DNA of 64,000 bases from Lepidodermella squamata. Its lineage: Eukaryota; Animalia; Gastrotricha. The position numbers and the translations under genes were made by a program. Positions 1,689-60,929 of this stretch are shown here, piece by piece (position 1 is the first letter of the stretch; each line of letters begins with the position of its first letter). The notes under the pieces were generated by a model. It ran no database searches. It was not told the origin of the DNA and was given only the letters and a program-made list of their open reading frames with translations. Where the stretch lies: the NCBI GenBank assembly GCA_047495785.1, contig JBLDXI010000003.1, positions 3,596,001 through 3,660,000 of the forward strand, read 5' to 3'.

Positions 1689-1917
1689 TGGTTCAAAAAA
1701 AGAGATGTTTAAAACTACTAACCTTATTCAAACTTGGTGTTATTCAGTGAATAAAATTGATAAGACTGAATTTTCGAAAATTTTATTTTATTGAAAGACA
1801 CGATTTTTGCAAGAGTGGCGCCTTTTTTGGGACTCGAGTCGCTGATACCTTTTAGAAAATCAAGTGGGCTATCAGTTTTGTCGACTCGTTTTAAAAAGTT
1901 TTCCATTTCCCAGGGTA

Positions 1918-2507
1918 CAGTGTGATTCAGAAAGGGCGCCCGAGCGCATCATAAACAGGCACGTGTTTGACACGGCCGTAGAAAAAATTGGATCGGATTC
2001 ATCAGTTTTTCCAGTTTTTGTGATGCATGAACGAGTGTTATTATCGTTCATTTTGGAGTCTGAAACAACACGACAGATCACGACAGATCACGACAGACAG
2101 CAAAAAAGCTTGCTGTAATCAATCAAATTTCGGTCCTATTATAAGCTGTTTTCAGATTTTTCACAGCTTTTTCAGTGATTTTAAGGACAGCAAGCACTGC
2201 TCCCATGCATTCACTTATTTGTTAACGACAGTTTTAGCTTTTTAGATTTATAGTCCGGATTTAATTATTAATTTCCCAAGGTAGTTTTTCGGAATTTCAA
2301 AATGCGAAGCTTCCGCACGGAATCTACCTATTCTTGTCAGTCGCCATTGAATCATAGTCTTATCTGTTGTTTTAGATTTATCAATTCTTGGCTATTATTA
2401 TTTTTTTGCGAAAGTTTTTTTCGAGTCGGCACGCGCGGACTTGAAAAATATTTTTGGGGAAAAAAAAGAAGGAAAAAATGCTAATCGTGGCTTTCTGAAT
2501 CCCACTG
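1918..2507. mobile_element. Tc1/mariner-type MITE (~590 bp)
   Basis: TIRs CAGTGTGATTCAGAAAG (1918) and CTTTCTGAATCCCACTG (ends 2507), 1 mismatch, with TA on both flanks. No coding capacity. Internal (CACGACAGAT)x3. Confidence 0.7.
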
Positions 2508-3522
2508 TACAACTCTAAATTCGTCTGAGTTTTTTATTTCGGGATTTGTACCGTAAAAGTACCGTAAAAGTGCCGCAGGAATCGGCTATTTTATCATGAT
2601 ATAATATAACTACTCGCTGTTTTTTTTCAAATTTCAGGTAAAATTTGTTTAAATTCCGAAAACAGCTTGAAACTTGCAGCAATATCATGAATCACCATGC
2701 CCACCTTAACTTCAATTTCCGAATCATCGTTTAACCATAGGTTGATTTTAACCTTTGAAAAACATTATTGGCTGTCAGAAAGGATTTACGATCGCTTGCT
2801 CTTTAGTCTTTAGTCTCGAATCATTTTTACCAGTAGCACGTATACTCTTTTACCGCCAACGATGATAACCATGCCGGTAAATATATGTTTCTTTACCAAC
2901 ACTTTTGCTAGCTGATGATCATTGATCATTGTTATTTAATCAATAAGCGGTGGGGAGCTGGCGATGCATGGCAATACAATTTCGCGGGCAACGTAGGAAA
3001 CATTTTCACCACCACTTTATGTGTAAGACGGTGAAAGACAAAAAATGCAGTGTATACTTTGACTTTTGTTTTCATTAAGCACCTAATTTGTCTGGCGGTA
3101 AGTTAATGCAGTTCTTCAACTTGGTTACTGGGCGGAAAAGTTACCGCCGGACTTGGGATCCGAAAATATCGTTAGCGTCGTTGAAGAATTCGGACCTTGG
3201 CTTGTTAGCTAAAAAATTCCGGAATAGAGAGTTAAAGAACTTGAACATTGAACAAGACCAAGCCCATAGAGCTAGTTTTGAGAGTTCGGGAATCGGGAAA
3301 AGAAAAGTCACTTGATTTGTTTACTTTGCCTGCAAGTCAATGCTGATTCACATCAACATCAATCTGGCGTTTACAGTCTTAGTCAGGGGCAGGACCTCGA
3401 TGACCAAGCCAAATGCGACCATCAGCATCGCGTGCCCTAATTCCTCAGCAGAAAGTGGAGCTGCTTGAAATTATTCCAATTTTTTTCCATTTTAAGACAA
3501 AATTGTATCTGATAAATTTGCA

Positions 3523-5329
3523 ATGGCGAATGCAGTCAAAGCTTTGGGCGCGATAAATCTCCGGCAAGCGTTTGCACACCACATGGAATCAATGTTCACT
3601 CGAAGCATCAACTGTGACGTAGCTTTTGCTGTCCAGGGCGAAGTCATTCAGGCCCATCGTTTGATCCTGGCTAGTCAGTCTCCCGTTTTCCAGCTGATGT
3701 TGATGAATGAAAATTTCTGCGAAGCTCGATCTACAATCGATAAGCCGATCAACTTGCCTGGCAAGACAGCCCCAGCCTTTAAAGCCTTCCTCTATTATTT
3801 TTACACTGGATTCGTTTTATTCGACAATCTATCGCCAACCGAGAGCGTGGAGATTCTCAAAATAGCCCACGAATATCAAATGGACGATTTGTTTGCCGAG
3901 ATGATTCAAGTTTTCTCGGTATGAATTCCATTCCAACTTTGGAGAAATATTTCCTCAATTTCTTTCAGAGAAATGTTTGCACTGAATTATTTTACGACCT
4001 TTTATTGGCAGCATTGTTCTTTGGCGAGGCTAAACTTCTGAAGGCATGCAAAGCCGTTGCCTGTAAGAACGCTGCAAAACTATTCAAAGACTGCAACTTC
4101 AAACGATTATCTGAACAAGCCCTCATCTACCTGTTCGATTTGGACGAACTCGGCATGTCGGAGCTGGAAGTTTTGATGGCGCTGAAATCTTGGCACGAAG
4201 CCAATCCTAAGGTCAATCTGTCGAATATTATCGAAAAAGTTCGGCTGGAGTTCGTCGCTATTCCTCCCAATGGCATTTCTTTCGCCGAAATTGGTCCCCT
4301 ATGCGAAATGCTCGGCGACTATGGAATTGATTTCAGCACGTTAGGAAAGGAATCGATCCATGACAGTGGCAGGAAACCTCGAACCCTAGCATTAGCCAAA
4401 AGCAATGTGGCAACTGTTGAAAAGGGTGCTACTGTTACCAGCGATGATTTCCGAGACGCTATTTCAATACTGTGGAGATATAATCCGGCTGATGCTCACA
4501 TGCGCTATATGTTAAATAATTGCGGTCCACCTGCTAGCTTCATGATTAAATCGAACGGGTCGATTACTGTTCAACTAGCCGAGCCCTGCGCCGTCGATTC
4601 GCTGCGATTCAATCTTGGCATAGAAGCGGATGACGACCCTGAGTTCATGATTGAAACGTCGCTAGATGGCAAAGTTTGGATGAGAATAGGGTACAGTCCG
4701 CCAACGCGACTACTCGGACGTCAGCTGGTCGTTTTCAAACCTCGAAATGTCAAATTTGGTAAGGTCCAGGACTAAATTTTTCCGACTCTTTAGCGCTTTC
4801 GGAAATTTATTTTGTGATCGATACTGATGCCCCGCGACCCTGGGAGTTTTTATTTTAGCTACCTGATACCATCAGCTAGGTAAAATTATTTTTACTGTCC
4901 TTTAGCTGGACTACTTACTGGCAAAATAACTGATTTGTAAAATCGATAATTGGAATCAATACTTGTTGAGGCTTAACTGACCCCTCATAGCCCAAATTTA
5001 CCCTTAATTGTTGGCATGATAAGTACCGTATTTAGGGGAACCCTAATGCTGGAACCATAAATCTAGGGTGTCTATACTTTGCGCACCAATTTCATTTGGA
5101 TCATTGCCTTCATTTTTTGTGTTTATATCACTCAGTCAGAATCGCGATTTTCTTCGACTTGAGCCAGGGTGACCTTTGGCTTTCCCAATTTGAATGTCCA
5201 GCGGCGATCCGAGACAAGCAGCCTGTCGAAAGCTGTCTCAGAATGGCTCCTGACGCTGCCTTTCGACTCGAAGGAAATAGTGATTATAAAGTGTTCGAGA
5301 GACTTCTCGCAGAAAGATTCAGTCATTAA
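3523..5329 (+). CDS. BTBD9-like BTB/POZ-BACK-discoidin protein, copy 2; exons 3523-3918, 3969-4758, 5136-5329
   Basis: Tandem paralog of 194-1688 with the same intron positions and phases. Intron 2 is larger (377 vs 114 nt). Confidence 0.85.
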
Positions 5330-6561: not shown

Positions 6562-9500
6562 TCAAATAATATTAATGGTGAAAAACATCTTTAACAAAAA
6601 TGATGAAAAAATTATTAGGTTAAAAATAGCATAGCAACAGTTCGATTTCGGCGCGAAAGAAGTTGCACTCATCAGACGAATATTTCGACGGCTATCAGTA
6701 AAGTCTAATTCAACGTCGATTTTCTGATTTGAACGCCTCGGCGGTTCGTTCGTTTCAGCATCGATTGCCAGCATAGCCGTGAATTCGCATAGAACACCGG
6801 TTGACTTTGAGATCAAGATAGCATCTTCACGGACAGCCTCACTTCGGCTTACTCGGTATTTGTCCTCTAATTCCGTTAATTTCCGCTTAGCAGCTAACCG
6901 ATGAAGCGGTAGAGTGTCATTTTCCGCTAGAAAATTGCGATAAAATGCGATAAAAAAGTTCGCAGAAAATTGAGAAAAATACCTGAAAATGCATTTCCTT
7001 CAACAACAAACTGCAATTTGCATCCGTCGCAATTTTTCAAATTAGCCGCCGAAAAAAATGAAGAGCCTGATATGCGCTGTCCTCGGAACCGTTCAAGAAC
7101 TGCGAATTGAAGCAACGGAACGTCTAAAAATTAATAAACTAGTTCAACAATTTATTGAAAATTTTTAATAAATTTTTAAATGATTTTTTTATTATCAAAT
7201 TTTAAATTTAATTTTAAATTTTTCAATTCGATTTCAAATTTCAGAAATTTTCAATTTAATTATTTAATTATTATTAAGGCGACTTGAAAGGGATTATTTT
7301 TGAGCGTGAAAGACTGGCCTCTCGTTTGCGAAAGACAACTAGTGATCCCGATGAAATTGTGCGAATCAATACGGCATTCAACGGGAAGAGACACGTCTTT
7401 AAACGTGTCAAATGGTCACATCACAATCACGGCCGCATTATTCCATCTAGCAACAAAGGTCGCAAGTGTAAAACTCGCCCAATCGACAGGATGCCGATCG
7501 CCTTCACTAATGAAGAGCTTCCACCTCAAAACTCGCCCATTTCTCGAAGCCAAAGCTTGAAAAAGTTTGTATGAAATTGCTCTCCGTCGACGAACCTCTG
7601 ATCCCTTTATGCCGCGATCTCGAGTCGGAGATGCAGGACTGCCTGGATAAACTGGACGTTCAGGCCGATCCGGATTCCGAGAAGCCTTTGACAGCAAAAG
7701 AAGCGCGATCTATTCTTCGGGATCGTGCTTTCGAGAGTTGGTGCGAATTGCCTGAAAAAGGGCAAGGTGTAAGTCAGTTCGCTGACTTTCCGGCTGGAAA
7801 CGACTGGATCTCAAACAAAACTGGACTATCAACTTCGGAATGGACAACGGCCATCAAATTCTCGACGAACTGTGCCGACGTTGCAGCAGCTCATGGTGGA
7901 AACAAGCCCCTCATCACTACCCGGTGTCGCTACGGTGATGCCGAGAAAGAAACCCTCGCTCATGTGTTAGGCGCTTGTAAGCACAATAGCTTCCTCATCA
8001 ACAAACGACATAACACTGTCCGCAGAATGATTGCTAATGCATTCAGAAGTCAGGGACACCGGGTATATGAAGAAGGCCACTGCGTAGCCGGTCCTGGACG
8101 AAACCATCGTTTTGACATTCTCGTCATTAAAGGAAAAAAAGGCCTGGTTATCGATCCGACAATCCGTTTTGAAGGACGTAGCGATCAATTTGAGATTGTT
8201 GACGCTGAGAAGAAATCGATATACGAACCATGTGCAAATGACATATGCGAGCAATGGAAGCTTGACGAGGTCACCGTACAAGGTCTTTACCTAGGTAGCC
8301 GAGGAACCATTACGAAGCAAACTACAAAACTATTTAAGGAATGGCAACTACCCAAACAGCTACTAACCGATATAACAAAATCGATCTTAAAGGACTCGAT
8401 CCACATATGCTTCAATCATAAAAAACAAAAATAATATCTTATAATCACTGTGTCGCAAGGCAACCTAATTATCTGTTAAATTAGGCAGTCCACATTTTTT
8501 CAATAAATGTTTATCTCTCAAAAAAATTAAATGAAATTTGTTTTTTTTCCAACGTACCGACTGAAATTCTTGGCAAATTTTTCGGAATCAGCTCTTTAAC
8601 TGACCCACCGGCTGAGATTGACCATTCTAGCGAAGCATTAGCCAAAGATGGCTGAGTCATGGCCTTCAGCATCGTCATCACCTTCGCCTCAAGCCGGTCG
8701 TTGTCACTCCTAACAAACGCCGATAGCCCACCCGTCGCCCGCGCAACCCCATTCACCAGGTCCGTACTCGCCCCTTCGCCGATCCCAATCGCAAAAACTC
8801 GGGTATCGTGTGCATGTTTCGTGGCTAAAGCGATAACTTCATTAGTATTGCTGACTTCACCATCAGTTAGAAGCAAAATGAACCGCTCGAAATGATCGAC
8901 AGATTTAGGCTGGGTGTAAACAAACTTCAACGGCTGTAAAATTTCAGTACCACCCAGGTCGGCACTTATCCCTTCCAGGTAACTCAAGGCCAATCGCGAT
9001 TTCGCCCGATCGAGGGTAACAACAGCCGGGAATAGGGTGACATATTCTGAGCCGAATCCGATTATATTAAATTTACAACCATATGGTAGCTTCGAGACCA
9101 AAAGACTCAACGCATTTCTCGCATGTTGAATTCGATTTCCCATATCCATCGAACCTGATCGATCGATAATTAGCCAAAACTCAAATTTAGCTGGTTCGAT
9201 AGCGAGAGACGTTTGATTAGTCGGAATAATCCAAGAAGCTGCAATGTCTTCACTTAGCCACGAATTCCGAAAATCGACAGATGCCGGCTCGACATAAACC
9301 ATGGGTTCGAAAATTTTCTCAGGTTTGATTAGAATTTGAAAATCATGTTGGCCGTCGAAGTTACTGGCCAGTTTGACCTTGGCAATAGTTTCACCGTTTA
9401 AATAGGAAATTTCGAGCTCATCGGCGTCATTTCTCGGCCATATCGACTCGATTCGTCGATCTAAACCGAGATTGACAGTTAGCTGGAATTGAAATGAATA

Positions 9501-10159
9501 ATCCTGGATTGAAACTGCTATATAAGTATCGTCGCCAGGAAATTTCGTCCTCATAACTTCTTGATCGAGAAGTTCATGATGTGGCACATAACGAGGGTTA
9601 AGTACAATAGGTAGGGTGAGTGATAAAATGCCGTCGTCCAGCATTGGATCGAGGGGTTGAACGTAGCCGATTGTTATAAGAGCGACTCCATAAGGTGGTA
9701 AATTTCCAAGGAGCAGGCGGAAAATGTCACTGGAACCCGATTTATTCTCCAGATAAACTGCCTTCTTGCCCTCTGAAACAGCTTTGTCATATTTCTTCCG
9801 TGCCTTGAAAAAAATCAATTATTTTAATTTTAAGATGGAATTTTTCAAATTACCTCATTTCGCTCTTCAACTTTTGCGACTAGTTTTCGGTCGCCTATCA
9901 CAGCTTCAAGGTGGTAAACTGCGGCTTCACTCGATAAAGGAAAGACAAATTGACACTCGAGATTCTCGCCAACCGAGCTTTCGTACTTCAAAGTCGCTAA
10001 AATTCCAACACTTAAGCCTCTAACTTCAGCCTGAATTGAGACGGCCGCGACAGGGACTGAATTCGATTTAGCCGCCGATTCCGAGTAGAAAACCACACCA
10101 GCGAATTCATAGGACGAAACGCTGCAGATTAGGAGGAATAAAGACAAAGGTAGAAGCAT
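6562..10159 (-). CDS. VIT + vWA domain protein (VWA5A-like) with signal peptide and C-terminal hydrophobic tail; exons 10159-9854, 9803-8558, 7123-6983, 6926-6562
   Basis: VIT (LECQFVFPL..AVYHLEAVIGDRKLVAKVEER), vWA MIDAS DRSGSM and LLTDGEV, VWA5A-type C-terminal LHRLAAK..ISKSTGVLCEFTAMLAID. All junctions GT-AG and in phase. Confidence 0.85.
7280..8526 (+). mobile_element. 5'-truncated or internally deleted RLE-class non-LTR retrotransposon (R2/NeSL/R4-like) in intron 2 of the vWA gene, antisense to the host
   Basis: ORF 7571-8434 has a CR...ETLAHVLGAC knuckle, RHN motif and DILV..IDPTIRFE..EKKSIY restriction-like endonuclease. The 3' UTR has a hairpin (CCTAATT..AATTAGG), AATAAA and a short A tract. 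No RT core seen; 5' boundary approximate. Confidence 0.8.
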
Positions 10160-11122
10160 AATAATACCTATTTAAAGAGAAAAAAGTTGGGTATAACATC
10201 TGATAATCCTAGGGCTATATTATAACGCAACGCATTCGAGAGCTACAGCAGGAAGAATACAAAATACCACAGCCATAATGTTAGACTATAGAAAATGCGT
10301 ATTATAATAATAGGCCGATGCGTATTTTATTTATGCGGTATTTTGCACTATTCAATGAATGATGCGAGAGAGTTTTTTATTACACGCCTCGAGCGTTGCG
10401 ATTGAGTTTGCGATTTATAACACAACCTCAAAGTTAGAGTTTACATCAGCGTTACATGGCTCATTTCCAAGAAATAATGAAACACCTGATGTCTGCTGTC
10501 GCCTGTCAATTTTATTATTTTTGTTTTCGTCGCTCGCATCATCGATAATACCTAAACACAAATTGTAGGGCAAGCGCACTACTGTTATTTATAACATCGT
10601 AATTAGATGATGATGATAATGTGGTGTCATGTATGTTTGTTGCTTTTATCGGGAAGAGGAAGCTCGTGCAGACAACATGTAGTGCAAATGTGGTATGCAC
10701 TCTATATCGAAAATCGTTGCGGTTTTGCCGCTCTAATGACTCACGTCGATTTCATTATTCGTCACTCTCCCACACACGCCGGCTTTATTTATAGCAGGGA
10801 TAGGTGATTGACGGACGGATGTTTCTTCAAATCGTTTGAAGATTTGTCTTTAAAAGAAATTGTCAAGTTGAAGCATCAGCAGAACAATTTGAAGCTTCAC
10901 TATTCGAATGAAAATGAAGTGAATTTTCTGAAACAGAAATGAGTGAATAAATGAGAAATTGTTTACGTTGAAGTTATGGTTTTTTCGGACACGAGGTTAA
11001 ACGGAAAAATATTGGAAAAAAATAACAAGCACGTGCTGTTTTGAATTGATCAGAAGCGATCGCGAGCCACCCTGATGCGGTTGCTTTGCCACGTAACAGG
11101 TGAAAATCATGGCTAGGCACGG

Positions 11123-11160
11123 TATAAAAACCCGGCTGAAACTTATCGAAATCATCATTC
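11123..11160 (+). promoter_or_regulatory. TATA box + initiator-like element of cationic protein gene A
   Basis: TATAAAAA at 11123 with TCATTC ~30 nt downstream, ~50 nt before ATG 11206. Confidence 0.55.
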
Positions 11161-11205: not shown

Positions 11206-12339
11206 ATGCGTTTCGCTCTCGTAGCAGCAGTTGTTGCTCTTTTCTGCGTCGGTAAGAATTTTTCGATAATCGCGGTTTCAGATTTCATTTTTTGCTTTTT
11301 TTCAGTCGCCACTTCGGCCAACGATGCGTCCGCCTCTGTGAACAAGAAGAGCGCCTCCGCCTCGGCTGGTGTCGACAAGGCTCACCATGGCAATCTGTAC
11401 TCTGGCAAGCACGGTCGCGGTTTTGGCTTCCACGGCCGCCGTCGCGCTGGAAACCACGCCTCTGCCTCAGTCAACAAGAACTCCGCCTCCGCCTCGGCTG
11501 GCTCCAACGGCAAGCGCGGATTCTTCGGTCGCCGTCGTCGCGGCAACTTCGCCTCTGCCTCGGTTAACAAGCGTTCTGCCTCCGCCTCGGCTGGCAATGG
11601 CCGTCGTGGCGGTCGCTTCTTCGGACACAAGGGTCGTCGTGGTGGCAACTTCGCCTCGGCTTCAGTCAACAAGAACTCCGCCTCCGCCTCGGCTGGCTCC
11701 AACAAGGGCCGCTTCGGTCGTCGCCACCACGCTGGTCGCTACTTCGGCCACGGTCGCCGCCGTGGAGGAAACTTCGCCTCTGCCTCGGTCAACAAGCGCT
11801 CCGCCTCGGCTGCTGCTGGCAACTTCCGCGGCCGTCGTGGTCATGGCAACTTCTTCGGCCGTCGTCACGGTGGTCGTCGTGGTGGCAACTTTGCTTCCGC
11901 CTCCGTCAACAAGCGTTCTGCCTCTGCTGCCGCTGGCAACTTCCGCGGCCGTCGTGGTCACGGATTCTTCGGACGCCGTCATGGCGGTCGTCGCGGTGGT
12001 AACGTCGCCTCGGCTTCGGTCAACAAGCGCTCTGCTTCAGCTGCTGCCGGTAACTTCCGTGGCCGTCGTGGCCATTTCGGTCTTCATGGCCGTCGTCGCG
12101 GTGGAAACTTCGCCTCAGCCTCCGTCAACAAGCGCTCCGCCTCGGCCGCTGCTGGCAACTTCGGCAAGCGCCGTGGATTCAAGCACGGTCGCCGCGGATT
12201 CCATGGCAAGGGCAAGCACGGTCGCCGCTTCGGCCATCATGGTCGCCGTGGTTCCCGCTCTTCCCGTTCCTCCCGCTCATCGGGCTCATCCCGCTCGTCT
12301 CGCTCGTCTCGCTCGTCCAAGGGCCGTCGCCACCATTAA
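11206..12339 (+). CDS. Secreted cationic repeat protein A (~359 aa); 8 x ASASVNKxSASAxAG modules with G/R/H/F spacers and an SRS tail; exons 11206-11251, 11306-12339
   Basis: Signal peptide MRFALVAAVVALFCVVATSA after a 54-nt phase-1 intron; strong codon bias; no Cys in the mature region. Confidence 0.85.
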   Translation: MRFALVAAVVALFCVGKNFSIIAVSDFIFCFFSVATSANDASASVNKKSASASAGVDKAHHGNLYSGKHGRGFGFHGRRRAGNHASASVNKNSASASAGSNGKRGFFGRRRRGNFASASVNKRSASASAGNGRRGGRFFGHKGRRGGNFASASVNKNSASASAGSNKGRFGRRHHAGRYFGHGRRRGGNFASASVNKRSASAAAGNFRGRRGHGNFFGRRHGGRRGGNFASASVNKRSASAAAGNFRGRRGHGFFGRRHGGRRGGNVASASVNKRSASAAAGNFRGRRGHFGLHGRRRGGNFASASVNKRSASAAAGNFGKRRGFKHGRRGFHGKGKHGRRFGHHGRRGSRSSRSSRSSGSSRSSRSSRSSKGRRHH

Positions 12340-12507
12340 ATAATTATACGAAACATGAGTCTATGAGAGATAATAGTTGTGAAATTCAATTTTTGCTGAC
12401 TTGCGCTCAGGTCATATATTTTTTTCTCGATCGTGAAAATCGAAAGATCTACTCGCTAAAAGTTAAAATCCTGTTTCCTGTTTATTCTTAGAATTATTGA
12501 TCTCAAA

Positions 12508-13882
12508 ATGCGTGTCTATCTCGCTCTCGCTGTGATTATCCTGCTTGCCGCTACCGGTAATTTTCTACAATCCAATTTTTAATTTTAGTCATTAAATTTC
12601 TCGACATTTTTATTTAGTCTCTGCCGGTGGTAAAGGCAAAGGTGCCAAGAAGGGTGGCAGCAAGAAGGCCTCTTTCTCCGCCTCGGTCGACCAACGCGAC
12701 ACCTACGACCGCAAGTCCGCCTCTGCTGAACAGGAAGACGCTGCCTTCGACTACGCCTCGGCCGATGCTTCCCACAACAAGAAGACCAGCGACAAGCGCA
12801 AGCTGATCAAGACCCGATCGGCCAGCAAAGAACGCGCCTCGGCCAGCTACGCCTCAGCTGGCAAGCGCGACTCCGCCTACGACCGCAAGAAGTCCAAGGC
12901 CGGCAGCAAGCGCCACGGCCGCAAACACCACGAAAGCACCTCGGCTGCCTCGGCCAAGCACGACAACGCCTACGCCGACTCTGGCGCCGCCGCCGCTGCC
13001 CAGAAGCACAAGCGCAACAAGAAGCACGGCCGTGCCGACCACAAGCGCAAGGCTGCTCTCCACAAGGACCAGGCCCGCGACAAGGCCGGCGAGGTGATCG
13101 AGTTCAAGAAGAAGACCTTCACCGACAAGGGCCACAACAAGGTCAACAAGTTCAGCTTCGAATCGGGCGCCAATGACTTTGCTGCCTTCGACTCCGACGG
13201 CGCTGCCACCACTGCCAGCCGCAAGAAGACCGCCAAGAAGGCCCATGGCAAGAAGTCCCGCAAGGCCCACTCCGCCGACTACGCCTCCCGCGACTCCAAG
13301 GCCTCGGCCGCCGCTGCTGAGAAGAAGGCGAAGCGCAACAAGGCCCATCAACGCCACGCCGCGACTTCTGTTGCCCGTAAGGCTCATAAGGGCCGCGACT
13401 ACAAGGCCAGCAACAAGAAGGCCGCCGAATCCGACTCTGCCCACACCCGCAAGGCCTCGGCCAAGAAGTCCAAGAAGCGCGCCAATGCCTCGGCTGAACG
13501 TGCCACCCACGACTTCCATGCTGGTGTCTCTGCCAGCTACCAAGAGAAGAGCGCCAGCGCCCCCAAGAAGGCCCCCAAGAAGGCACCCAAGAAGGCTGCC
13601 AAGAAGGCCAAGAAGTCCTCAGTCTCGCACAGCTACGGAAAGAAGAGCGCCAGCGCCAAGAAGGACAGCGGCTACCATGGCAAGAAGGCTGCGAAGAAGG
13701 GCGGCAAGAAGGGCAAGAAGTCCTCAGGCTCTTTCAGCTACGGAAAGAAGAGCGCCAGCAGCAACGGCTACCATGGCAAGAAGGGCGGCAAGAAGACCGA
13801 AAAGAAGGGTGGCAAGAAGGCCGGCAACAACCACGGCTATGGCAAGGAAGCTGCTCATGGAGATAGCACCTACACATACTAA
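12508..13882 (+). CDS. Secreted Lys/Ala/Ser/His-rich protein B (~437 aa) with a histone-H1-like (PKKA)n segment; exons 12508-12556, 12618-13882
   Basis: Signal peptide MRVYLALAVIILLAATVSA with a phase-1 intron. Exon 2 is stop-free and in frame with ORF 13094-13882. AATAAA at ~13981. Confidence 0.85.
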
Positions 13883-14412
13883 GCCATCACTTTTTTGTTC
13901 ATGGCAAAAACTTGATAGATGCGATTTATTTTTCGAAATGTTTATGATATTATGCATCTGTAATTTGATTGCAGAGAAATAATAAAGTTGCAAATGTTAT
14001 TTTGAGTCATCCGCGTCTTTTAATAGTTTCAATTGCGCTTCATTTGCCTTATCGTGCATTGTTCCTTCCGCGAATCTAATAACGGATGTTAATTAGCGGG
14101 ATGAGAGTTGAGAGAGGCGAAAACAGGCTATCGTGGTTGCAGCTAAAGAAACCTGTTAGCCTGTTTCCCTGAGATAAACAGGTATTTACTCGCATTAAGG
14201 CCACAAATCGGCATTGTTATCTTTGCTAAGCGCCGACAACATGGGAAAAATATAACACAAAAGATAAGTAATGAGCTCATCGCCGGAATCGAGAGCCAAA
14301 GGAAAATAATTAATTTTTGTCCCGTGTGATACATAATAAGCTAATTGACAAAGAAGGCTTTACATCATGAACGGCTAAAATCACTTGAAAAATTTTATTT
14401 AAATTTTCAACC

Positions 14413-14860
14413 ATGCGTTTTTATCTAATACTAATTTTTTTAATAATCGCTGTTACAGGTAATTAATTTTTCAGAAATTCAGAAAATTAACGAAAATTCT
14501 ATTAAAGTTGCGGAAGCTAGCCGTAGAAATGTGGAGAGAAGGAGACGGACACCATCGCCAACATCTTCACTTGTTCAAATTCAAAATTTAAGAAGGCGAA
14601 ACCCAGCCCGGCGGAAGTATCGCATTCTGCTGCAAAAAGTGCGCCCATCAACGCCGCGATCGCTGCGCCGTCGAATGCGTCATCGAAGGCGATTACCTGG
14701 TGGCGAACAGCCCGGGCGATTTTTCTCGCCAGTTCGCACGGCCTGGGCAACAAACCGCGGCTGGATTCGCGTGCCTGATGAGTTCTGGAGGGGACGCCGA
14801 TTCAACGCTGTTCGAAGAAACAACCTGCGACGTCCTTACAGAAAAATCTACCTTATTTGA
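14413..14860 (+). CDS. Secreted Arg-rich cationic peptide C (~132 aa); exons 14413-14458, 14508-14860
   Basis: Signal MRFYLILIFLIIAVTVAEA across a 49-nt phase-1 intron, in frame with ORF 14531-14860; same exon design as genes A, B and D. Confidence 0.7.
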
Positions 14861-15442
14861 AATTTAAAATTCGATAAATCTTGTATTAAATAAATACATA
14901 TTGTACAACATTTGATATCAGGTGATTTTGCGTAATTTTTCGTCTACTTTTGAAAAGTTTATTTCTTTTTAATTTATCACATTGAAATATAGTTACTGCA
15001 CTGCTTCAGACTTCGGTGGGAAGAAATGAGTCATCGATGCGGGCTATTGATTTTTTCTGAGCGCGCTATTACGGAATGTGATGCCGATGAATCATCACGG
15101 CTGATGTTTGTGCTGTGAATGCAAATACACGTATAAATGCCTTATAAGGCTACCAGGCATTGAAATCGTGAATCATCAGGTTATTCATTATTGCTCTCAG
15201 TGTAAAAAATGACAAATATAGAAGGTATTTCGCCGCATCTCGGTTGACAAAGCGCAGTACTTTTTTCGGCCCTCGCAAATTTTCCCGTTTAAATGATAGT
15301 TTTATTAGCAGAAAACTTAACGAAACCATGAGAATCAATTCGTTCGACACCGATTTCCTACTTGCCAATTGATCTTTTTAATTTCTCTGCTTGGTTAATG
15401 GTTGAGTTAAGGTAAAGATTTCATGGATATTTAACGTAACGC

Positions 15443-15683
15443 GGGGTAGATTTTCGATAAGGTGACCTTAGAACATTGAAACTTGAGCCGCTTTGGAGGC
15501 TCTTTATTTTTTTTCCCGTTGAAAGCTAGAAAAATGGGATTTTTTAATGTAATTCTTCATCTCATTAGCTTTAATTTGGCAATCAACTCGGGGGACGAAA
15601 TTCGATTGTGAAAAATTGCTAAAAAATCAGATTAAGCTACGAGATTTCTCAAATTTGCGGGAAAATCAGGAAAAATCTACCCC
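15443..15683. mobile_element. Possible small MITE
   Basis: 12-bp inverted repeat GGGGTAGATTTT / AAAATCTACCCC. Internal CGTTGAAAGCTAGAAAA recurs near 23930. No TSD found. Confidence 0.3.
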
Positions 15684-16499
15684 TACTTTGGTTTAAATTT
15701 CAGAATTTTTTAATTGACGCTTTATTCAGCCTTCAAAAAACATTCGTTTTTGCACAATTTTGCAAATTTTTTCACTAAATTTTTTAATTCAATTAGTCCG
15801 CGAAATTATTTAAATTAAGGCGGAATTTTTTATTTTCATGTTTCTGCCTGATGCTCTTTAAAATTCGTTTTTATCTATAATGTTGATCTGTAATTGGGAG
15901 GGTAGAGCAGCGCAACAGCTTGCGCATTTAGCGGCACGTGTCTATTGTAGCGCCTGCATGGCTGCTCGCTTTTCCCGCCGCAGCAGAAAAATCATCCTGT
16001 TTTATGGCGGCGTCGCTTGTTTTAATTCATCACCCCATGCCATCTTCTACCCACACTCGTACGTATGTACGCGCACACACGCACAGGCTCACTGACACTC
16101 TCTGTAATAGCCGCATGTATTACGTGTATGCTAAACCAGGCATGCTAAACGTTGATGCTGCTGAACTTGCAACTCTTGTATGAATAAACTAGCGTAGTCG
16201 GCATTTATTAGTGTGCCAGCCAACTAATAAAATACTACTTGTAGGTTATACGTTTGCGTAAACACATAAATGCAGATGAGTCATAGAGAACGCTTTTTTC
16301 TCTGTAGGTATATAGTAGTACTTCATAACGCCATTATTCTGCAGACCCGTTACTGAAAATACATCCATCTGCTCGGTAGAAATGCGATTACCCATCAGTT
16401 ATAACTTGATACTTTTCTGCTCGTTTATTTGCACGCAGCAAATAAAAATTCCACCTTAATTTTATCTAGATACACTGTGATAAATTTTTTTACATCTCA

Positions 16500-19384
16500 A
16501 TGTCAAGTATGGTTGAAGCTTCATCACGAAGCGGCATCGGTAATTACGGCATGGAGCAGTTGATTACCGTTGTCAATCAGCTGCAAGACGCTTTCACTTC
16601 GCTCGGCCTGCCGCTAACTCTCGATCTGCCCCAAATCGCCGTTGTCGGCTGCCAGTCGGCCGGGAAAAGTTCTGTTTTAGAAAATGTCGTCGGGCGTGAT
16701 TTTCTGCCGAGAGGCTCAGGCATTGTTACTCGTCGACCTCTTGTCCTGCAGCTAATCAATCACCAGGCGGAATTCGCCGAATTTCTTCACATGCAAAATC
16801 GTAAATTTACCGATTTTAATGAAGTTCGCAAGGAAATTGAGCGAGAAACCGACCGACTTCTCGGCTCGAAAAAATCAGTATCAAGCGTGCCTATTAATTT
16901 ACGCATCTACTCGCCTAATGTGTTAAACTTGACAATGATTGACTTGCCGGGGTTAACTAAAAATCCCGTCGGTGATCAGCCTCGTGATATTGTCGATCAA
17001 ATTCGAAATATGGTTCTCGATTACATTTCTCGCGATAATTGCTTGATTTTAGCCGTCTCGCCGGCTAATGCTGATCTAGCAAATTCAGACGCGTTGCAAA
17101 TCGCGAGAGAGGTCGATCCTCAGGGCCTGCGAACTGTCGGCGTCATCACGAAGCTAGATCTAATGGACGCTGGAACAGATGCGAAGGACATTTTAGAGAA
17201 TAAAGTCCTGCCACTTCGCCGCGGTTACATCGGCGTCGTCAATCGAAGCCAGCGAGATATTGAAAATAACCGCGATATAAAATCGACGATTGAGGCTGAG
17301 CGCAAATTTTTCGCCGACCATCCTGCTTATCGGCATTTAACCGAGCGCAATGGAACGTTGTATTTACAACGGGCGCTGAATCAGCAGTTGACTGAACACA
17401 TTCGAGAGCGGCTGCCGAGCTTGCGAAGCGAACTGCATGGCAAATTGATGACGATGGAGAAGGAGGTGTCGGAGCTTAAAGACTGTGATGAAAGCGGCCG
17501 GCGGCGGAAAATGAATCATTTTGTTCACATTTTCTCGTCAGATTTCGATCAGGCAATTTACGGATCTGATGCTGATGTAAGCTGATTTTTTCCTAATTTT
17601 TTCTGAATTTATTTGAATTTATTTCAGATTTTAAACAATTCTCTCAACGCTGGTGCAAAAATTAACAGAATTTTCCACTCGAAATTTCCGGTTGAACTTG
17701 CGAGGTTAACGTTCGACAAGCGGAAGCTGCATAACGAGATCAGTTACGCAATTTGGAATAATGAGGCCGTTCGTACGAGTTTATTCACGCCCCATGCGGC
17801 TTTTGAAGCCGTTGTCCGCGGCCAAGTTCAGCGCATTCTCGAGCCGTCATATCGCTGCGTCGACATGGTGCTCGTCGAAGTGCTAGGTGCAATTAATAAA
17901 TGCTCCGTTAAAATGCAGCGGTATCCGAAGCTACAGACTGAATGCGAGCGGATTGCGATTCAAAAGATGAAGGAATGCGAACAGGCGTGTAAACAACAAC
18001 TCAGAATGTTGACTGATATGCAACTCGCTTACATCAATACCAATCACAAGGATTTTATCGGCTTCACAGAGTAAGTTGAAAATAAATTCATTTAAATTCC
18101 ACTTTTTGAATTTTTGAAAATTTCAAATTTTTTTAAAAATTATAGAAAATTAAGAAAAATTTCAAATTTATTTTTAAAATGTTAAAATTTTACTATTTTA
18201 CTATTTTAAAATTTGTAAATATGAAAATACCCTTCATTATTATTTTTCATTTTACTTTATTTTTTTTTTACATTTTTTAAGGGCTTCTCAGCAAGCTGAC
18301 GCAGCTCCTCGAACCCAGCAAAAACCCGTTGCCAACCAGGTGTGGGCGAAAGGTTACCTGACCCTGCACAACGTCAGTTTTCTGAAGGGCGGATCTAAAG
18401 AAGCCTGGTTCGTTTTAACAACCGATTCTTTGAGTTGGTACCCGGATGAACGCGAAGAGAATCGCAAGTACCAGCTACCGGTCTCCGGGCTGAAATACCG
18501 CGATCTCTCGTCGTCGGGTAGCAAGGCCACATTCGCGTTGTACAGCGCGGACGGGCGCAATGTCTACAACGAGTACAAACAGCTGGAACTGTCGTGCTCG
18601 AACAATGAACAAAAGGACGCTTGGAAAGACGCCTTTCAACACGCTGGCGTCTCTTCTTCCGATCCGACTTCATCGCCTGGTCCTTCGATATCATCCCAAA
18701 AGAGTCGTTCTGAGGTAAAATTTGAGTGATTTTATTTAGTCGATTTTTCGAATTAAAAAGAATTTTTTTCAATTTTTATTATTTTTTTCAAATTTTTCTA
18801 TTTTTTAAACTATATCTATGAATTTAATTCAAAATTTAAGAATTTTTTTAATTTTTATTAATTTTTCAATTTTGTTAACTTGACAGTAATTAATTTTGAT
18901 TTTTTTGTAATAGTTTGATGATATTGTGCTCGATGATGAAGCCCTGTCGAATGATCACATTCACCGCCGTCGAGTCGAAACAATCGCGAAATTCGTCGAA
19001 TCTTATATGGCGATTGTTCACAAAACGACCCTCGACATGGTACCAAAGGCAGTCATGCTCACCGTTATCTCAGAACTGAAAAAATTCTTCGCAACCGAAT
19101 TTCACATTGCAGTGTCGATGTCTGAGGCGGATTTGATGCGCGAGAGCCCCGAGGAGACTGAGTATCGCGAAAATATGCTGAAAACATTTGCGGCTACGCA
19201 GAAAGCGCTGTCTGTCATCAATGACGTGTGTTCGAAGGGCATTAGTCTGCCGAAAGCTGCTCCGATCGGCCGAACCGGGTCGACCGACTCAACCCGGGCG
19301 CTGGGGGCTCCGACTCGGCCGGCGCCTCGACTAGCACCCAAGCCTGGCGTAGTCACCTCGGGTCAACCCGCTGTCCCTGTTTAA
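16500..19384 (+). CDS. Dynamin (GTPase, middle, PH, GED, short Pro-rich tail), ~807 aa; exons 16500-17576, 17628-18070, 18282-18714, 18914-19384
   Basis: [34 protein letters not shown]; [10 protein letters not shown]; PH (WFVLT..LSWY); GED ([19 protein letters not shown]). Splices in frame. Confidence 0.93.
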
Positions 19385-20084
19385 ATTATGCTCTAAACAA
19401 ATTTGTCACCATAAATATTTGTAAATAATTCCGATTTTACTGTGACCTATTTTAGTGCCTGTGACCCTGGAATGTTGTTTATTGCATGTACATTTTTCAA
19501 GCTTATTATTTGTTTAATTATTTCGAGGTCGGGCGGCTTTTATTGGTTAACTTATTATTACTCTGTATCGATTCGGTGCAAAAGTGAATGAATATCGGAA
19601 AGACTCGCGATTCTGTGAGCTGAGAAATTTTAAATAAATTTCTTTTATTGTGAATAAATTTGATATTCGAAGTCGATACCATTGAATTTTGTCACGCATA
19701 CCTAAAATTATTGCCGCAATTTTGATCGTTTAATTGGCTGGGCAATTAAGAGTAAATTTTTTATTTTAAGGTGGAGAGTAATGCCTGGGGTATGTGCACT
19801 GGCGCCAGCCGCATAAATATGGCACAATGAAACACCTTAAATACGTGATAAGAATTTCGACTCGATACAAAAAAGTGGACGGCCGCAAATTCCGGCCCGT
19901 TCATATCTTCTTGTATTGTTTGTTTTAACGCCCCAGCGCGCGCATTACGGTGATGCGATAAAACACCCCGTATAATTAGAGGCTTTACTACACACGATAA
20001 CAGAACACAGAAAACTGCTAGCAACAGGAAGCGACGAATACATCCTTGCACCGGCGGTTTTTCTAATATCTTACCTATACAAAA

Positions 20085-21188
20085 ATGCCGTCTGCAACTT
20101 TTTACGTCATGGAAAAGTTCGAACAAGACCCGGGTTACGGGTTTCGATTGCTGCACAAACCTGGCGATGCTCACATGAGGATTGATAACGTCAAGCCGAA
20201 CAGCCCCGCCTGGCGATGCGGCCTGCGGGAGGGCATGTTTCTAATCGGCGTCAACTCAACCTCAGTTTTGAACAAAACCCTCGCCGAAGTTACGGCCCTG
20301 ATCAAATCGATCGGTGGGAATCGGTTAACCTTCGAATGCCTACCTGGCGATATCGACGATGTTTACGGAAATGTCGAAGATGGCAGCGATTCTGAGCCGT
20401 CTGAGGCGAGATCACCCAGCGGGTCAGGCTCGATCGGTGAATCATTACAGCCATACGAAAATACCGCTGCCGCGAATCCGCCGAAATCTGCTAGTTTTTC
20501 GTCAATGGATTCAAGCCAATCGCCCCAGACCCCGGCACCAACGCCCAACAACCCTACGGCAATAATCGAGCGGAATCAAAGGCCGTTACCTGCGCCGCCA
20601 CTTGTTGTGAGTCAGCAGTCACGTGTTTCGGCGGTTTACATCGAATTGCCAACCGCGAGAACCGAAAAGTTTCAGCAAAACTTCAGCATCGATGAACAGC
20701 CTCATCCCGTTGTTTTTCATCACCTTCGAAAATGGGCCAGTCATCACGAGTTCGGATTTGCCGTTTCAAGGCCGGCTGACGGTAAGAAAATTATTTTAAA
20801 AATTATTTTCGAATTTAAAATTTTAAAATTTTTCAAAGGTCCATTAACTATGGTTCAGATAGAAGAGAACAAACCAGCTTTTTGTAGCTCTATTCGAAAT
20901 GGGATGATTCTATGCCAAGTCAACTCCCACTGGGTGACCAATTTATCACTAGCCGAAACTGCCGAGTTAATAAAAGGTAGGTCAACCTAATTAGTCGCCG
21001 AATACGCTTTAATTTTTGTGTTTTTTTAAGAAAGTGGAGACGAAGTAACTGTTACGGTGATCACGAAGGAAACTCATGCGTGGCTTCAACGTTGCGGCTT
21101 CACCATCGAGGAATGCTTCTCCGAGCTTCGAAAAGAGACCTTCGATCCACCACCCGAATTGCCGTCATCGCCGATACCAGAAGAATAA
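20085..21188 (+). CDS. Two-PDZ-domain scaffold (NHERF-like); exons 20085-20781, 20839-20976, 21031-21188
   Basis: PDZ1 GYGFRL..SPAWRCGLREG..IGVN; PDZ2 EFGFAV..LCQVN..ETAELIKES; GT-AG introns in phase; AATAAA after the stop. Confidence 0.8.
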
Positions 21189-21524
21189 CAACATTTATTC
21201 CGCCTTCGCCATCAAATAAAGCTTATTGTTTATTCAGAAAATAAAAAAATGAACTATTAATTTTTCCGAATTTTTGTATTTTTTCGACCTGTCTTCGACT
21301 GGTAGACCGCTAATAAAGAGAAGCTGCGCAGGAGAAGAAAATAACCGATTTGAGGCGTAAATAGCGCGTGCCAACCCGTGTGCCAACGTGTGCCAAAGAA
21401 TTGCGCAACATGCGTGAAATTAAGCAAAAAAACAACAAATAGGTGTATTTAATAAGACTGATTTTCAGCAGTGATTTCAAATCAAGCAGATATTATTTAG
21501 TTTTAATAAAGCCTCCAATCAACC

Positions 21525-22952
21525 ATGAGAATCATTCTTGCTGCTGCTGTTGTCGCGCTGTTCTGCGTCGGTAAGTTGTAGTTTTCCAAGCAAAATTTCA
21601 ATTCAGCTTCAAATTAAATTTCTAATTTTTCAGTTTATACCGATGCCAATCAGCCAAAGGAGCCCAAGTCTCCGAACTTCGCCGCCCAAAATTTCGACAT
21701 CAACGCTTACATCACCCAGGCTGAAGCTGACGCTAAGAAGGCTCAGGCTGCTCAGGAAGCCGCGAAGGCTGCCGAAGCTAAGAAGCAGGCTCAAGCGAAG
21801 AAGGCTGGAAAGAAGGCCGCCGAAGCAAGCGCATCTGCCTCGCAGGGCAGCGCCTCAGCTGAGGTTAAGAAGGGTGGCAAGAAGGTGAGCGCCTCCGTTT
21901 CGAAGAACAGCGCATCTGCCTCGGCTGGTGATGCCAAGAAGGGTAAGGGCGGTCGCAAGGGTGGTTACGCCTCGGCCTCCGTCAGCAAGAACTCCGCATC
22001 CGCCTCGGCTGGCAACAACAAGGGTCGCAAGGGCTTCAAGAAGTTCGGTGGCCACAAGGGCAAGAAGTTCGGCGGTCGCAAGGGCAGCTACGCCTCTGCC
22101 TCGGTTAACAAGAACTCCGCCTCGGCTTCTGCTGGCAACAACAAGGGCCGTAAAGGCTTCAAGAAGTTCGGTGGCCGCAAGGGCAGCTACGCCTCGGCTT
22201 CAGTCAGCAAGAAGTCCGCCTCCGCCTCGGCTGGCAACAACAAGGGTCGCAAAGGCTTCAAGAAGTTCGGTGGCCACAAGGGCAAGAAGTTCGGTGGTCG
22301 CAAGGGCAGCTACGCCTCAGCCTCGGTTAATAAGAACTCCGCCTCGGCTTCTGCTGGCAACAACAAGGGTCGCAAAGGCTTCAAGAAGTTCGGTGGCCAC
22401 AAGGGCAAGAAGTTCGGTGGTCGCAAGGGCAGCTACGCCTCTGCCTCGGTTAACAAGCGTTCTGCCTCCGCCTCGGCTGGCAATGGCCGTCGTGGTGGTC
22501 GCTTCGGCCACAAGGGTCGTCGTGGTAACTTTGCCTCGGCTTCAGTCAACAAGAACTCCGCCTCTGCCTCGGCTGGCTCCAACAAGGGCCGCAAGGGCTT
22601 CAAGGGCCGTCGCCATCACGCTGGTCGCTTCGATCGCCGCCGTGCTGGAAGCTTCGCCTCTGCCTCGGTCAACAAGCGCTCCGCTTCGGCTGCTGCCGGC
22701 AACTTCCGCGGCCGCCGTGGTCACCATGGCAAGTTCTACGGCCGTCGTCACGGTGGTCGTCGTGGCAACTACGCCTCAGCCTCCGTCAACAAGCGCTCTG
22801 CCTCGGCTTCTGCTGGCAACAACGGTCGCCGTTATGGTCGCCATGGTTTCAACGGCCGCCGTCGTGGTGGCCAGTATGCCTCGGCTTCCGTCGACCGCAA
22901 CTCGGCCTCTGCCTCAGCTGGCAGCAACGGTCTTCTCCAACTCGCATTTTAA
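21525..22952 (+). CDS. Secreted cationic repeat protein D (~454 aa), paralog of A; Ala/Lys/Glu/Gln-rich leader then 10 x ASASV(N/S)KxSASAxAG modules; exons 21525-21570, 21634-22952
   Basis: Signal MRIILAAAVVALFCVVYTDA with the same phase-1 intron; exon 2 in frame with ORF 21885-22952; near-identical DNA blocks shared with gene A. Confidence 0.85.
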
Positions 22953-23072: not shown

Positions 23073-24958
23073 TCATGAGTTCATAAAATAAGAAATCCAC
23101 TTGAGAACCGAGTCGGAACAAACGCGCCCGAAAACGCTTGGAAAGACAGCACAAGGCTCACCTCCCCATGACGCCACCCCGTCCAGGGTAAAATAGCCAT
23201 GTTTAAAACACGCCAACGAGCTGCCGCTATCTCCATAACAAATCGAAGTTCCGCCCATTTGAAAGCCGGCGCAAACATTTCGATCGGTTACGTTAAACCG
23301 GGAGTTGCCATATTTTTCTAAACAGTCGGAGTTCAGCCATAACGGGACGACAGCCTTTTGGAGTTCGGTTTTAGCCAACTCGTTGTCGGTATGGCCCCAT
23401 CCAGAAATAACGGCTATATCGCCGTTTTGACACGTCTCAGCACAAGATTGAGGTAAGCAAATGGGCTTGATAGACCAGCTTTTAGAGAAATTTAATTTAT
23501 CATTCAGCCGTATCAGACAGAAATCGTTTTCCAAGGGCGTGTCTGAATAAAACGGGTGGCGATGGAAATTCGACTTGGGAACATTTATTTCAACCTGAAA
23601 TCGACATTTTTAGAGTCACAGCTAAAAATATCAGGAAAAATATTGCTCGGACTTGTTGAAGGGAAAATGAATTTAGGGGTAATTATTTCTGAAATCGACC
23701 ATCGAATCCTCATCGATCCCACCTCAATTGTTTTACCTGTTGACCTGTTTCTTGGACATTCCGTTTTTCGACAATTCTGAGCTTTCAGTTTATCCATTCT
23801 CTTTCGGAAAAAAAAACTTACATGTAGCCTATGAGAAGGCGAGTCTTTTGACACCGAGCTTGCATAATTTTCGGCCTGAAAAAGGGACATTTCCTTACCT
23901 AGCTCGCGTCCCTGAGTCATTTTTTAAACGTTGAAAGCTAGAAAATTCGCCCATTTCGATTTAATAGTTATGTCAAATAAAATGTGTTGGCCCGCCAATA
24001 TTTCGAAAATTATGTAACTGAAATGAAACGCGCTGAATGCGCTGAATCCGAATCTGCAATAAAAACATTGGGTCAACAATTTTGATGGGGTCGATGTTGA
24101 TTATCTGGTCGATATTATAATCACTCTTAATTATCTAGAACAGATTGGTTTTGCTGGTTCCGAGGTTGCCCAAGCCTGATAAATGCTATTTTACCTACTA
24201 GCTACTACGCAGATGATTTTCTTTGATTTTTTGAAAATTAAGGTTAAAACCGATAAAAGTTCATAGATCAAACTAAAAATTAACCAAATCCCAAATTAAC
24301 CTGTGGTTTTACACCCTGAGAGTGGGTATAGCATTATTGTCTCTGGCGGGAATTGTAGAGGAGAGGTAATTTTGAAGGTTAAGCCTACCGAGAAGTCAGA
24401 ACCACTGTTCCAGCCCATTTTGACATCAGCGCTGAAATAAATAACATGAAATTAGCCGCCTGAACCAAAAAATCAATAATTTTGCATTTTTAAATTTTTC
24501 CTCTATAAATTCTATATCATTCTGGGAATTTCTTTGAAGAAATTAAAAATTTTATTGAGGACATCTTTTCATTTGTACCTGTGAGCAGTCTGGCTACAGC
24601 AGTGGCCGGCGGTTAGAACTAGTTTATTGTCAATAATCGAACCACTGCAAATCCAAGACTTTGACGATGAATGGAAAACAAGCTGCGCCATCCACGGAAA
24701 TTCCGCCGGCATTGCTAAGACGCCGCCCATAATTGCAGCCGCCTTATCTTGTCGTTTCGACTCATGGTTCCAGTATTTGCTATGACCACATTGGCGATGA
24801 TTCGGCACCGACTTGGCGGCATTTTGCGGCGTCTGTTTAGACGCTGAGTAAGCGGCTTTGATATTGTCATTGCCTGCGAGTTGGCATCCGAGTGATACGC
24901 GGGCAAAAAATGATGTCACGACTAAATAGGTTGATAATTTGTCTAGTATAAACAGCAT
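23073..24958 (-). CDS. Secreted S1A serine protease (non-tryptic S1 pocket); probable exons 24958-24579, 24431-24301, 23542-23073
   Basis: IMGG mature start, EFPWMA, CSGSII, TAGHC (His), ENDFCL (Asp), GDSGS (Ser), GVASWG, PSVF. Middle exon is less certain. Confidence 0.82.
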
Positions 24959-60454: not shown

Positions 60455-60929
60455 ACACATCTCGTGAGAGTGGATCGTCGAGTCGCGGTCCCACCAGAAG
60501 CGGGTCTCCCACTCGGCATCGGTGAACACCGTGGTCCAGCCGGCCTCAGTCGCGGGGATGACCTTCTTGGTGCCGAAGCCGAACAAGCGGCGGAATTTAC
60601 CAGTCAAACCCTCATCCTCATCTTCACGCTTGGTCGACATCATATCGACGTGCATGAATGCGTCCCAGTTGGGCTGGCCCAGCGAGTTGCGCGGGTTGGC
60701 TCCGACGAATTTGACAGTGACAACATCACCCGGCTTGTAGCTGGCGGCCGGGGCTTGGGTGACATCACCGTACTTCTTGGTGCCAGATCCGTCGTAGATG
60801 ACACCCGGGACGAGAGACCACTGAACCGACTTGAGGTAAGGCGGTTGCGGGCCCTCGGGGACTGGGGTTCCGGTGATGATAGCCTTGGCGAGCTCGGTGA
60901 AGATCTGAATGTAGGCGGGCAGCGACTGG
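60455..60929 (-). other. Inverted segment: 198-bp duplicate of 60257-60454 plus the next 277 bp of ceramidase coding sequence
   Basis: 60732-60929 is the reverse complement of 60257-60454. The minus strand continues ..YKPGDVVTVKFVGANPRN..DAEWETRFWW. Confidence 0.9.

Follow-up and report, generated by a model that had tools for sequence, protein, structure and literature searches.

Do four neighbouring genes that open on the same kind of signal exon and encode strongly basic proteins form one family, and what might their products be for? The question is posed by a 64,000-nucleotide (nt) stretch of the genome of the gastrotrich Lepidodermella squamata (GenBank assembly GCA_047495785.1, contig JBLDXI010000003.1, positions 3,596,001–3,660,000 of the forward strand; hereafter the window, numbered from its first letter), in which reading of the sequence, with all splice options tested, places four two-exon genes, A, B, C and D, on the plus strand. 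A first-pass annotation, made from the sequence alone, had grouped them as one cluster of co-secreted components of a gland product. The comparisons described here reduce the family to A and D, whose proteins alternate a conserved Ser/Ala-rich module with polycationic linkers, and leave about an even chance that A, B and D contribute in bulk to a secreted extracellular material, A and D as block copolymers and B as their partner.

In their mature parts only A and D are homologous, and the idea of a single four-gene family is not borne out. The two proteins align colinearly at 67% identity, with a local alignment score (z = 34 against 200 shuffles) that places their similarity beyond composition; the A–B alignment is no better than shuffles (z = 0.1), the D–B alignment is marginal (z = 1.8, a value reached by 7 of the 200 shuffles) and gene C scores below the shuffle mean against A, B and D alike. 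The DNA of A and D matches at 79% over 580 nt, all of it in the coding repeats, with no match listed in the promoter, intron or untranslated regions (UTRs). The motif ASASVNK occurs eight times in A, ten times in D and not at all in B or C, which limits membership of the module family to A and D. These alignments make A and D a clear pair of paralogues, with B similar in composition only and C unrelated; the first-pass grouping is corrected to one in which, at this locus, unrelated secreted low-complexity genes of one genome share a layout of signal exon and phase-1 intron.

The repeat unit of A and D is a 15-residue module, ASASVNK[NKR]SASA[SA]AG, of which each ASASVNK motif marks one copy; it is usually preceded by Phe in A (once each by His, Val and Asp) and by Tyr or Phe in D (once by Lys). 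Across the 18 copies the amino acid is invariant at 10 of the 15 positions, despite the use of up to five codons, and pairs of modules differ on average by 5.9 synonymous versus 1.7 non-synonymous codons, which means that the peptide is under purifying selection and not merely the outcome of recent DNA copying. Modules of A share 93% identity with those of D; for the linkers that join them (13–29 residues) the figure is 56%, with 40 insertion or deletion (indel) columns. Linker composition is nevertheless the same in the two proteins, with 30% Gly, about one-third Arg/Lys (including 11 Arg–Lys swaps) and 13–15% aromatic residues: those of A are rich in Gly, Arg, Phe and His, span 16–29 residues and carry a net charge of +5 to +8 each, and those of D are rich in Gly, Lys, Arg, Phe and Tyr and carry +4 to +10 each. 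This pairing of a sequence-constrained module with a composition-constrained linker is the pattern of block-copolymer structural proteins.

The shared exon layout itself is as the first-pass annotation had described it. In all four genes a signal exon of 46–49 nt begins with MR, encodes a hydrophobic core in 15–16 codons plus one base, and is followed by a GT..AG intron of 49–63 nt in phase 1 that splits a Val codon (GTC or GTT). The introns of B, C and D contain an in-frame stop, so that splicing is required; direct evidence of splicing comes from gene A, the junctions of B, C and D being taken from sequence. Signal peptides are supported for all four products as predictions, with probable cleavage by the −3/−1 rule after TSA (A), VSA (B), AEA (C) and TDA (D), and the proteins are presumably secreted. 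On both strands of the whole window, the combination of signal exon and short intron in its phase-1 form occurs only at A–D. However, genes for secreted proteins in general carry a phase-1 intron close to where the signal peptide is cleaved (PMC1626468), and the layout alone is therefore no proof of common descent. The mature proteins also proved, as had been noted, free of Cys and strongly basic, with isoelectric points (pI) of 12.0, 10.4, 12.0 and 11.9 and net charges of +79, +75, +32 and +89 for A, B, C and D, respectively.

The two remaining genes differ from this pair in different ways. The protein of gene B is rich in Lys (21%), Ala (20%), Ser, His and Tyr and includes 38 acidic residues; Ser-Ala islands follow its aromatic residues, Tyr occurs within S-Y-G-K-K and G-Y-H-G-K-K, and 105-nt tandem repeats are present in the final third of the gene. 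The mature product of gene C has 113 residues, 29% of them Arg, and contains no repeats. Compared with a second haplotype or strain, represented by a DNA contig of sequencing run X5, exon 2 of gene C shows nine differences, eight synonymous and one Pro-to-Gln, which indicates that the gene is truly coding; the same contig differs at four positions of the 49-nt intron. In the longest open reading frame of the opposite strand, the seven third-position changes become second-position changes and none of the nine falls on a third position; selection therefore acts on the plus-strand frame of gene C.

Expression was judged from the assembled contigs of two cDNA-like runs, X1 and X6, alongside the DNA run X5. 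In X1 depth is zero in all intergenic bins and coverage lies on exons; near gene A it is zero over 10950–11148 and coverage starts in the next bin, and one contig joins 11250 to 11305, skipping the 54 nt of the gene A intron. A SMART cDNA primer forms the loose end of an X1 contig at 13927, which identifies X1 as a cDNA library although its record is silent on the matter; X6, from another study and another year, has the same exon-only pattern and extends to 13999. For gene D, X1 contains 0.84 of the sampled words of the exon, and the fraction is still 0.66 in a run with just 2 Mb of contigs in all; this suggests that the D transcript ranks with the most abundant ones. Summed depth over A and B, with paralogues and repeats included, reaches 10^4–10^5 versus 45–110 for dynamin, and the sole contig specific to the 3′ UTR of A has a depth of about 1,100 versus 60–83 for dynamin contigs. 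The expectation of expression thus holds for A, B and D, which are transcribed, and fails for C, which is nearly absent from X1 (depth only about 4).

Codon usage separates the genes along the same line. The effective number of codons (ENC) is 30.8 in A, 30.1 in B and 34.8 in D, versus 52.9 in the dynamin gene, 52.8 in the PDZ-domain gene and 58.0 in C, which is without codon bias; A, B and D encode Arg solely by CGC or CGT and Lys by AAG, and dynamin prefers AAA and AAT. The strong bias reported for A, B and D in the first-pass annotation is thereby upheld, and it supports heavy translation independently of contig depth. Production of A, B and D is probably high.

The DNA run X5 offers a separate observation on the copy number of these sequences. 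Over window positions 11348–13934 its depth is 60–100 in the flanks and 600–4,900 over the exons of A and B, a 10–60-fold excess that fits many paralogous copies elsewhere in the genome, and 549 contigs cover the A/B region, many of them just 90–95% alike. Runs of a second organism, a related species, contain 6–7% of the sampled words, in contigs mostly about 90–95% alike.

Beyond such copies, no relatives were recovered. Pfam, queried with all four mature exons at E values up to 1, gave no meaningful match, including none to the curlin repeat; queries with A and B in a word index of proteins, and with D and B in PDB sequences, found none, and an ESM Atlas feature search with D gave no usable match. 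HMMER with D against 1.84 billion protein representatives returned one match (E = 2e-7), to a cyanobacterial caspase-NACHT-WD40 protein, which was rejected because it reflects periodicity only, and a scan of metagenome contigs with the A/D alignment returned 194 pattern matches, all rejected as relatives. A literature search for the letters of the module found none, papers on the glands of rotifers and on orphan secreted proteins offered nothing relevant, and Rfam found none in the window. Homology to silk fibroins or cross-beta silks was absent from Pfam, PDB sequences and the 1.84 billion proteins, and no sequence search yielded a relative among the Gly/Ser-rich cement proteins of barnacles (GSrCPs). 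In keeping with the first-pass proposal, then, Pfam, PDB, HMMER, the word index and the metagenome contigs were all empty of a match to a characterised family; on the evidence of sequence, A and D are an orphan family whose design varies on known secreted block-copolymer materials.

How the modules might be arranged in space is suggested by AlphaFold models built on the two-sequence alignment of A and D, with a mean predicted local distance difference test score (pLDDT) of 55.7 (A) and 59.5 (D). Every module of either protein is modelled as a strand-turn-strand hairpin with its turn at N-K-x (pLDDT about 65–76), and the linkers fall below 50. Within the sequence of the module itself, residues alternate such that one side of each strand would be Ala/Val and the other Ser, an arrangement shared with sheet-stacking silks. 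Foldseek with the model of a module protein returned nothing significant (E = 4); in an exhaustive structural search curli CsgA ranked first (Z 13.6, root-mean-square deviation 7.4 Å, 188 residues aligned, model mean pLDDT 56), followed by other beta-solenoids, adhesins and ice-binding proteins. Curli-like stacking of the module hairpins is accordingly offered as a low-confidence lead only. Ahead of its modules, the gene D product has an Ala/Lys/Gln/Glu-rich stretch that AlphaFold models as a helix (residues 22–69, pLDDT 73–87); this N-terminal helix of about 48 residues (window 21696–21842) is found in D only, without counterpart in A, and may be an oligomerisation or storage domain.

Taken together, these features lead us to infer hairpin stacking and a role in a material, which might be the cement, thread, coat or egg envelope of a small invertebrate with short introns. 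The module would fold as a beta-hairpin with one Ala/Val face and one Ser face. Stacked along a single chain or across several, such hairpins would build a cross-beta sheet from which the disordered Gly/Arg/Lys/Phe/Tyr/His linkers loop out as a polycationic, aromatic brush. Such a brush would keep A and D soluble in storage and, after release, would condense or adhere through charge, cation–pi and His contacts with polyanions or surfaces. Product B would be a Lys/Ala/Ser/Tyr-rich partner from the adjacent gene, and C a separate, weakly expressed, secreted Arg-rich protein that shares only the layout of the signal exon. Since the modules of A and D lack an S-x-E primer, they are expected to be unphosphorylated and cationic.

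Several points weigh against a material role. Because A and D would stay strongly cationic, an anionic partner would be needed; the many dibasic sites fit proteolytic processing as well; and the summed depths mix paralogues and repeats, so that they are unusable as levels. The structural models, for their part, have a mean pLDDT of only 56–60 on an alignment of two sequences, Foldseek gave no significant match, and Z scores of about 13 are common for models of repeat proteins. A more ambitious version, in which curli-like cross-beta stacks of Ser/Ala hairpins with a polycationic aromatic brush on every rung, B-type partners, a multi-cluster region of dozens of orphan genes and coacervation with polyanions would together constitute an undescribed animal material principle, we consider rather doubtful.

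Among other explanations, host defence survives best, although it too appears unlikely: the intact proteins, or peptides rich in Gly, Arg, Phe and His that are cut from them at KR, RR or RGRR, would kill or agglutinate microbes, and the Ser/Ala module would be a processing spacer. Several dibasic sites do occur in each linker, R-G-R-R follows four of the A modules, and a conserved spacer-like module between variable linkers would be in order; the linkers also recall armadillidin, the nematode caenacins and similar Gly-rich cationic antimicrobial peptides, a resemblance counted in favour of defence. However, the spacers of known antimicrobial polyproteins are usually acidic and the module here carries +1 to +2, its internal KR is present in just 8 of the 18 copies, so that cleavage there is not conserved, and the linkers retain composition and charge, not sequence, with many indels. 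Nor is the hallmark of a polyprotein, a product peptide conserved together with the dibasic sites on both its sides and set between spacers of acidic or neutral charge, what is found: the conserved unit is the uncharged-to-basic module, and the dibasic sites flanking it differ between A and D and follow from linker composition. Codon bias and cDNA coverage, finally, indicate bulk synthesis without a known challenge.

A role confined to charge-neutralising packing, in which the polycations would compact a negatively charged cargo inside secretory granules (DNA, sulfated glycans of mucus, or a poly-Asp protein or phosphoprotein) and bear no load, would suit proteins of net charge +75 to +89 with no Cys and no known domain. 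It is decidedly improbable, however, since charge neutralisation alone leaves unexplained why purifying selection keeps an uncharged Ser/Ala module so constant and why a stack of hairpins is predicted. Least credible by far are neuropeptide or hormone polyprotein precursors giving amidated peptides at G-[KR]-[KR], for example with NFR-amide or FF-amide ends, because the recurrent FFGRR, RFGRR, NFRGRR and SNGKR of A are yielded by composition alone in linkers of 30% Gly and about 30% Arg/Lys, have no conserved counterpart in D, whose linkers are Lys-rich instead, and come from genes whose extreme codon bias, together with the presence of D in the 2-Mb contig set, misfits neuron-restricted expression.

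The coordinates of the four genes and of their surroundings are collected in Table 1.

Table 1. Features of the locus and its neighbourhood, in window coordinates
Feature	Position	Strand	Remarks
Gene A exon 1	11206–11251	+	MR and hydrophobic signal, 15 codons + 1 base
Gene A intron	11252–11305	+	54 nt, phase 1, GT..AG; splice seen in cDNA contig
Gene A exon 2	11306–12339	+	whole protein 359 residues; 8 modules and linkers
Gene A C-terminal (SRS)n tail	12253–12318	+	read from sequence
TATAAAA box	11123–11129	+	about 80 nt upstream of gene A start codon; read from sequence
Gene B exon 1	12508–12556	+	signal, 16 codons + 1 base
Gene B intron	12557–12617	+	61 nt, phase 1; in-frame stop inside
Gene B exon 2	12618–13882	+	whole protein 437 residues
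Gene B AATAAA	13981–13986	+	X6 contig end at 13999, 13 nt beyond
Gene C exon 1	14413–14458	+	signal exon
Gene C intron	14459–14507	+	49 nt, phase 1
Gene C exon 2	14508–14860	+	whole protein 132 residues
Gene D exon 1	21525–21570	+	signal; 10 of 15 residues same as gene A
Gene D intron	21571–21633	+	63 nt, phase 1; in-frame stop inside
Gene D exon 2	21634–22952	+	whole protein 454 residues; 10 modules and linkers
8-mer TGAAAATC	11101–11108, 12434–12441, 21460–21467 (−)		upstream of A, B and D
Dynamin gene	16500–19384		three introns (about 50, 210 and 195 nt)
PDZ-domain gene	20085–21190		between C and D
Trypsin-domain exon	23076–23534	−	begins 120 nt past the D stop
Two BACK-domain genes, VIT + von Willebrand A gene, neutral/alkaline ceramidase gene	588–4775, 8514–9818 (−), 59073–60464		ordinary neighbours; short intron splits ceramidase

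Genes A, B and C lie together and D follows 6.7 kb on, with the dynamin and PDZ-domain genes between C and D; the trypsin-domain exon beside D means that a secreted protease gene adjoins the cluster. The first exon of the dynamin gene shares 62–72% identity with metazoan dynamins, and its closest public partial protein, on a metagenome fragment, is 79% identical, so that sampling of the lineage must be poor. No relative of A–D lies in the sequence flanking that fragment's match.

The spacing of A and B is a further observation. Only 168 nt (12340–12507) lie between the A stop codon and the B start codon; from A, cDNA-like contigs reach 12402 (X1) and 12468 (X6, with 18 further unaligned letters), an acceptor-like AG (ttattcttag) ends at 12490, 17 nt upstream of the B ATG, and a TATA-like atatat lies at about 12414, within the 3′ UTR of A. 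B could follow A in an operon resolved by trans-splicing, or else be driven by its own promoter inside the A 3′ UTR. The 8-mer TGAAAATC occurs 65–105 nt upstream of the A, B and D start codons, which accounts for three of its six occurrences in the window, and may at most be a weak candidate for a shared regulatory word; because its count in the window equals chance and its choice was post hoc, it is not claimed as a shared promoter motif.

If the reading of A, B and D as components of an extracellular material is true, A and D would represent a compact, sequence-defined block copolymer of 35–45 kDa, encoded by two exons, with no Cys and no known domains, in which a silk-like hairpin is joined to a coacervating polycation and which is easily expressed and tested; such a protein could account for the cement, thread or coat of a microscopic animal. 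To that picture this window contributes the D paralogue, the non-kinship of B and C, the test of selection on the module and, with A and D both modelled, a second structure model.

Known systems each match part of this design. Sandcastle-worm cement contains bulk secreted polycations rich in Gly, Lys, His and Tyr that condense with polyphosphoserine partners; A, B and D resemble these polycations, but are known here from genes and transcripts, and neither an anionic partner nor any sign of DOPA or a cement gland was found. The repeats of lacewing egg-stalk silk have a periodicity of 16 residues. Like the modules of A and D, for which the fold is a prediction, the repeats of this cross-beta silk are Ser/Ala/Gly-rich and strand-turn-strand (PMC5485732), but they are contiguous, without polycationic linkers, and no homology to A or D was detected in the searches above. 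Curli CsgA (PDB 8c50 and 8enq), the best structural neighbour of the low-confidence model as a stack of strand-turn-strand units (Z 13.6 and 8.2), differs in being bacterial, in its Gln/Asn ladders and in having no long linkers, and A and D have no Pfam curlin match.

A block design is found in the heavy-chain (H-) fibroin of caddisflies, an underwater material in which (SX)n blocks alternate with Gly-rich spacers (PMC13267644). Its [(SX)nE]m blocks (PMC13267644, PMC4929942) share with A and D the Ser-X strands, thought to form small beta-domains, and the Gly-rich, Arg-containing spacers; unlike A and D, however, it is encoded by a giant gene of more than 20 kb (10.1101/2022.08.29.505681), and its Ser residues are phosphorylated and Ca2+-bridged, with a terminal Glu as primer, whereas the modules of A and D lack S-x-E and are cationic. 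In barnacle cement, 40% of the proteome has a pI above 10 and silk-like Gly/Ala/Ser/Thr blocks alternate with Arg/Lys-rich blocks (PMC5099703). The blocks of the barnacle GSrCPs (Aa43 and the Aa19 family; PMC5099703) are about 100 residues long and Gly/Thr-rich, as opposed to a fixed 15-residue Ser/Ala module with a predicted hairpin, and their presence in cement is demonstrated, whereas A and D are known from genes and transcripts. Like A and D, for which secretion is predicted, the GSrCPs are nonetheless secreted, very basic and lineage-restricted, and the alternation of short-side-chain and basic blocks recurs in both, as a resemblance of design.

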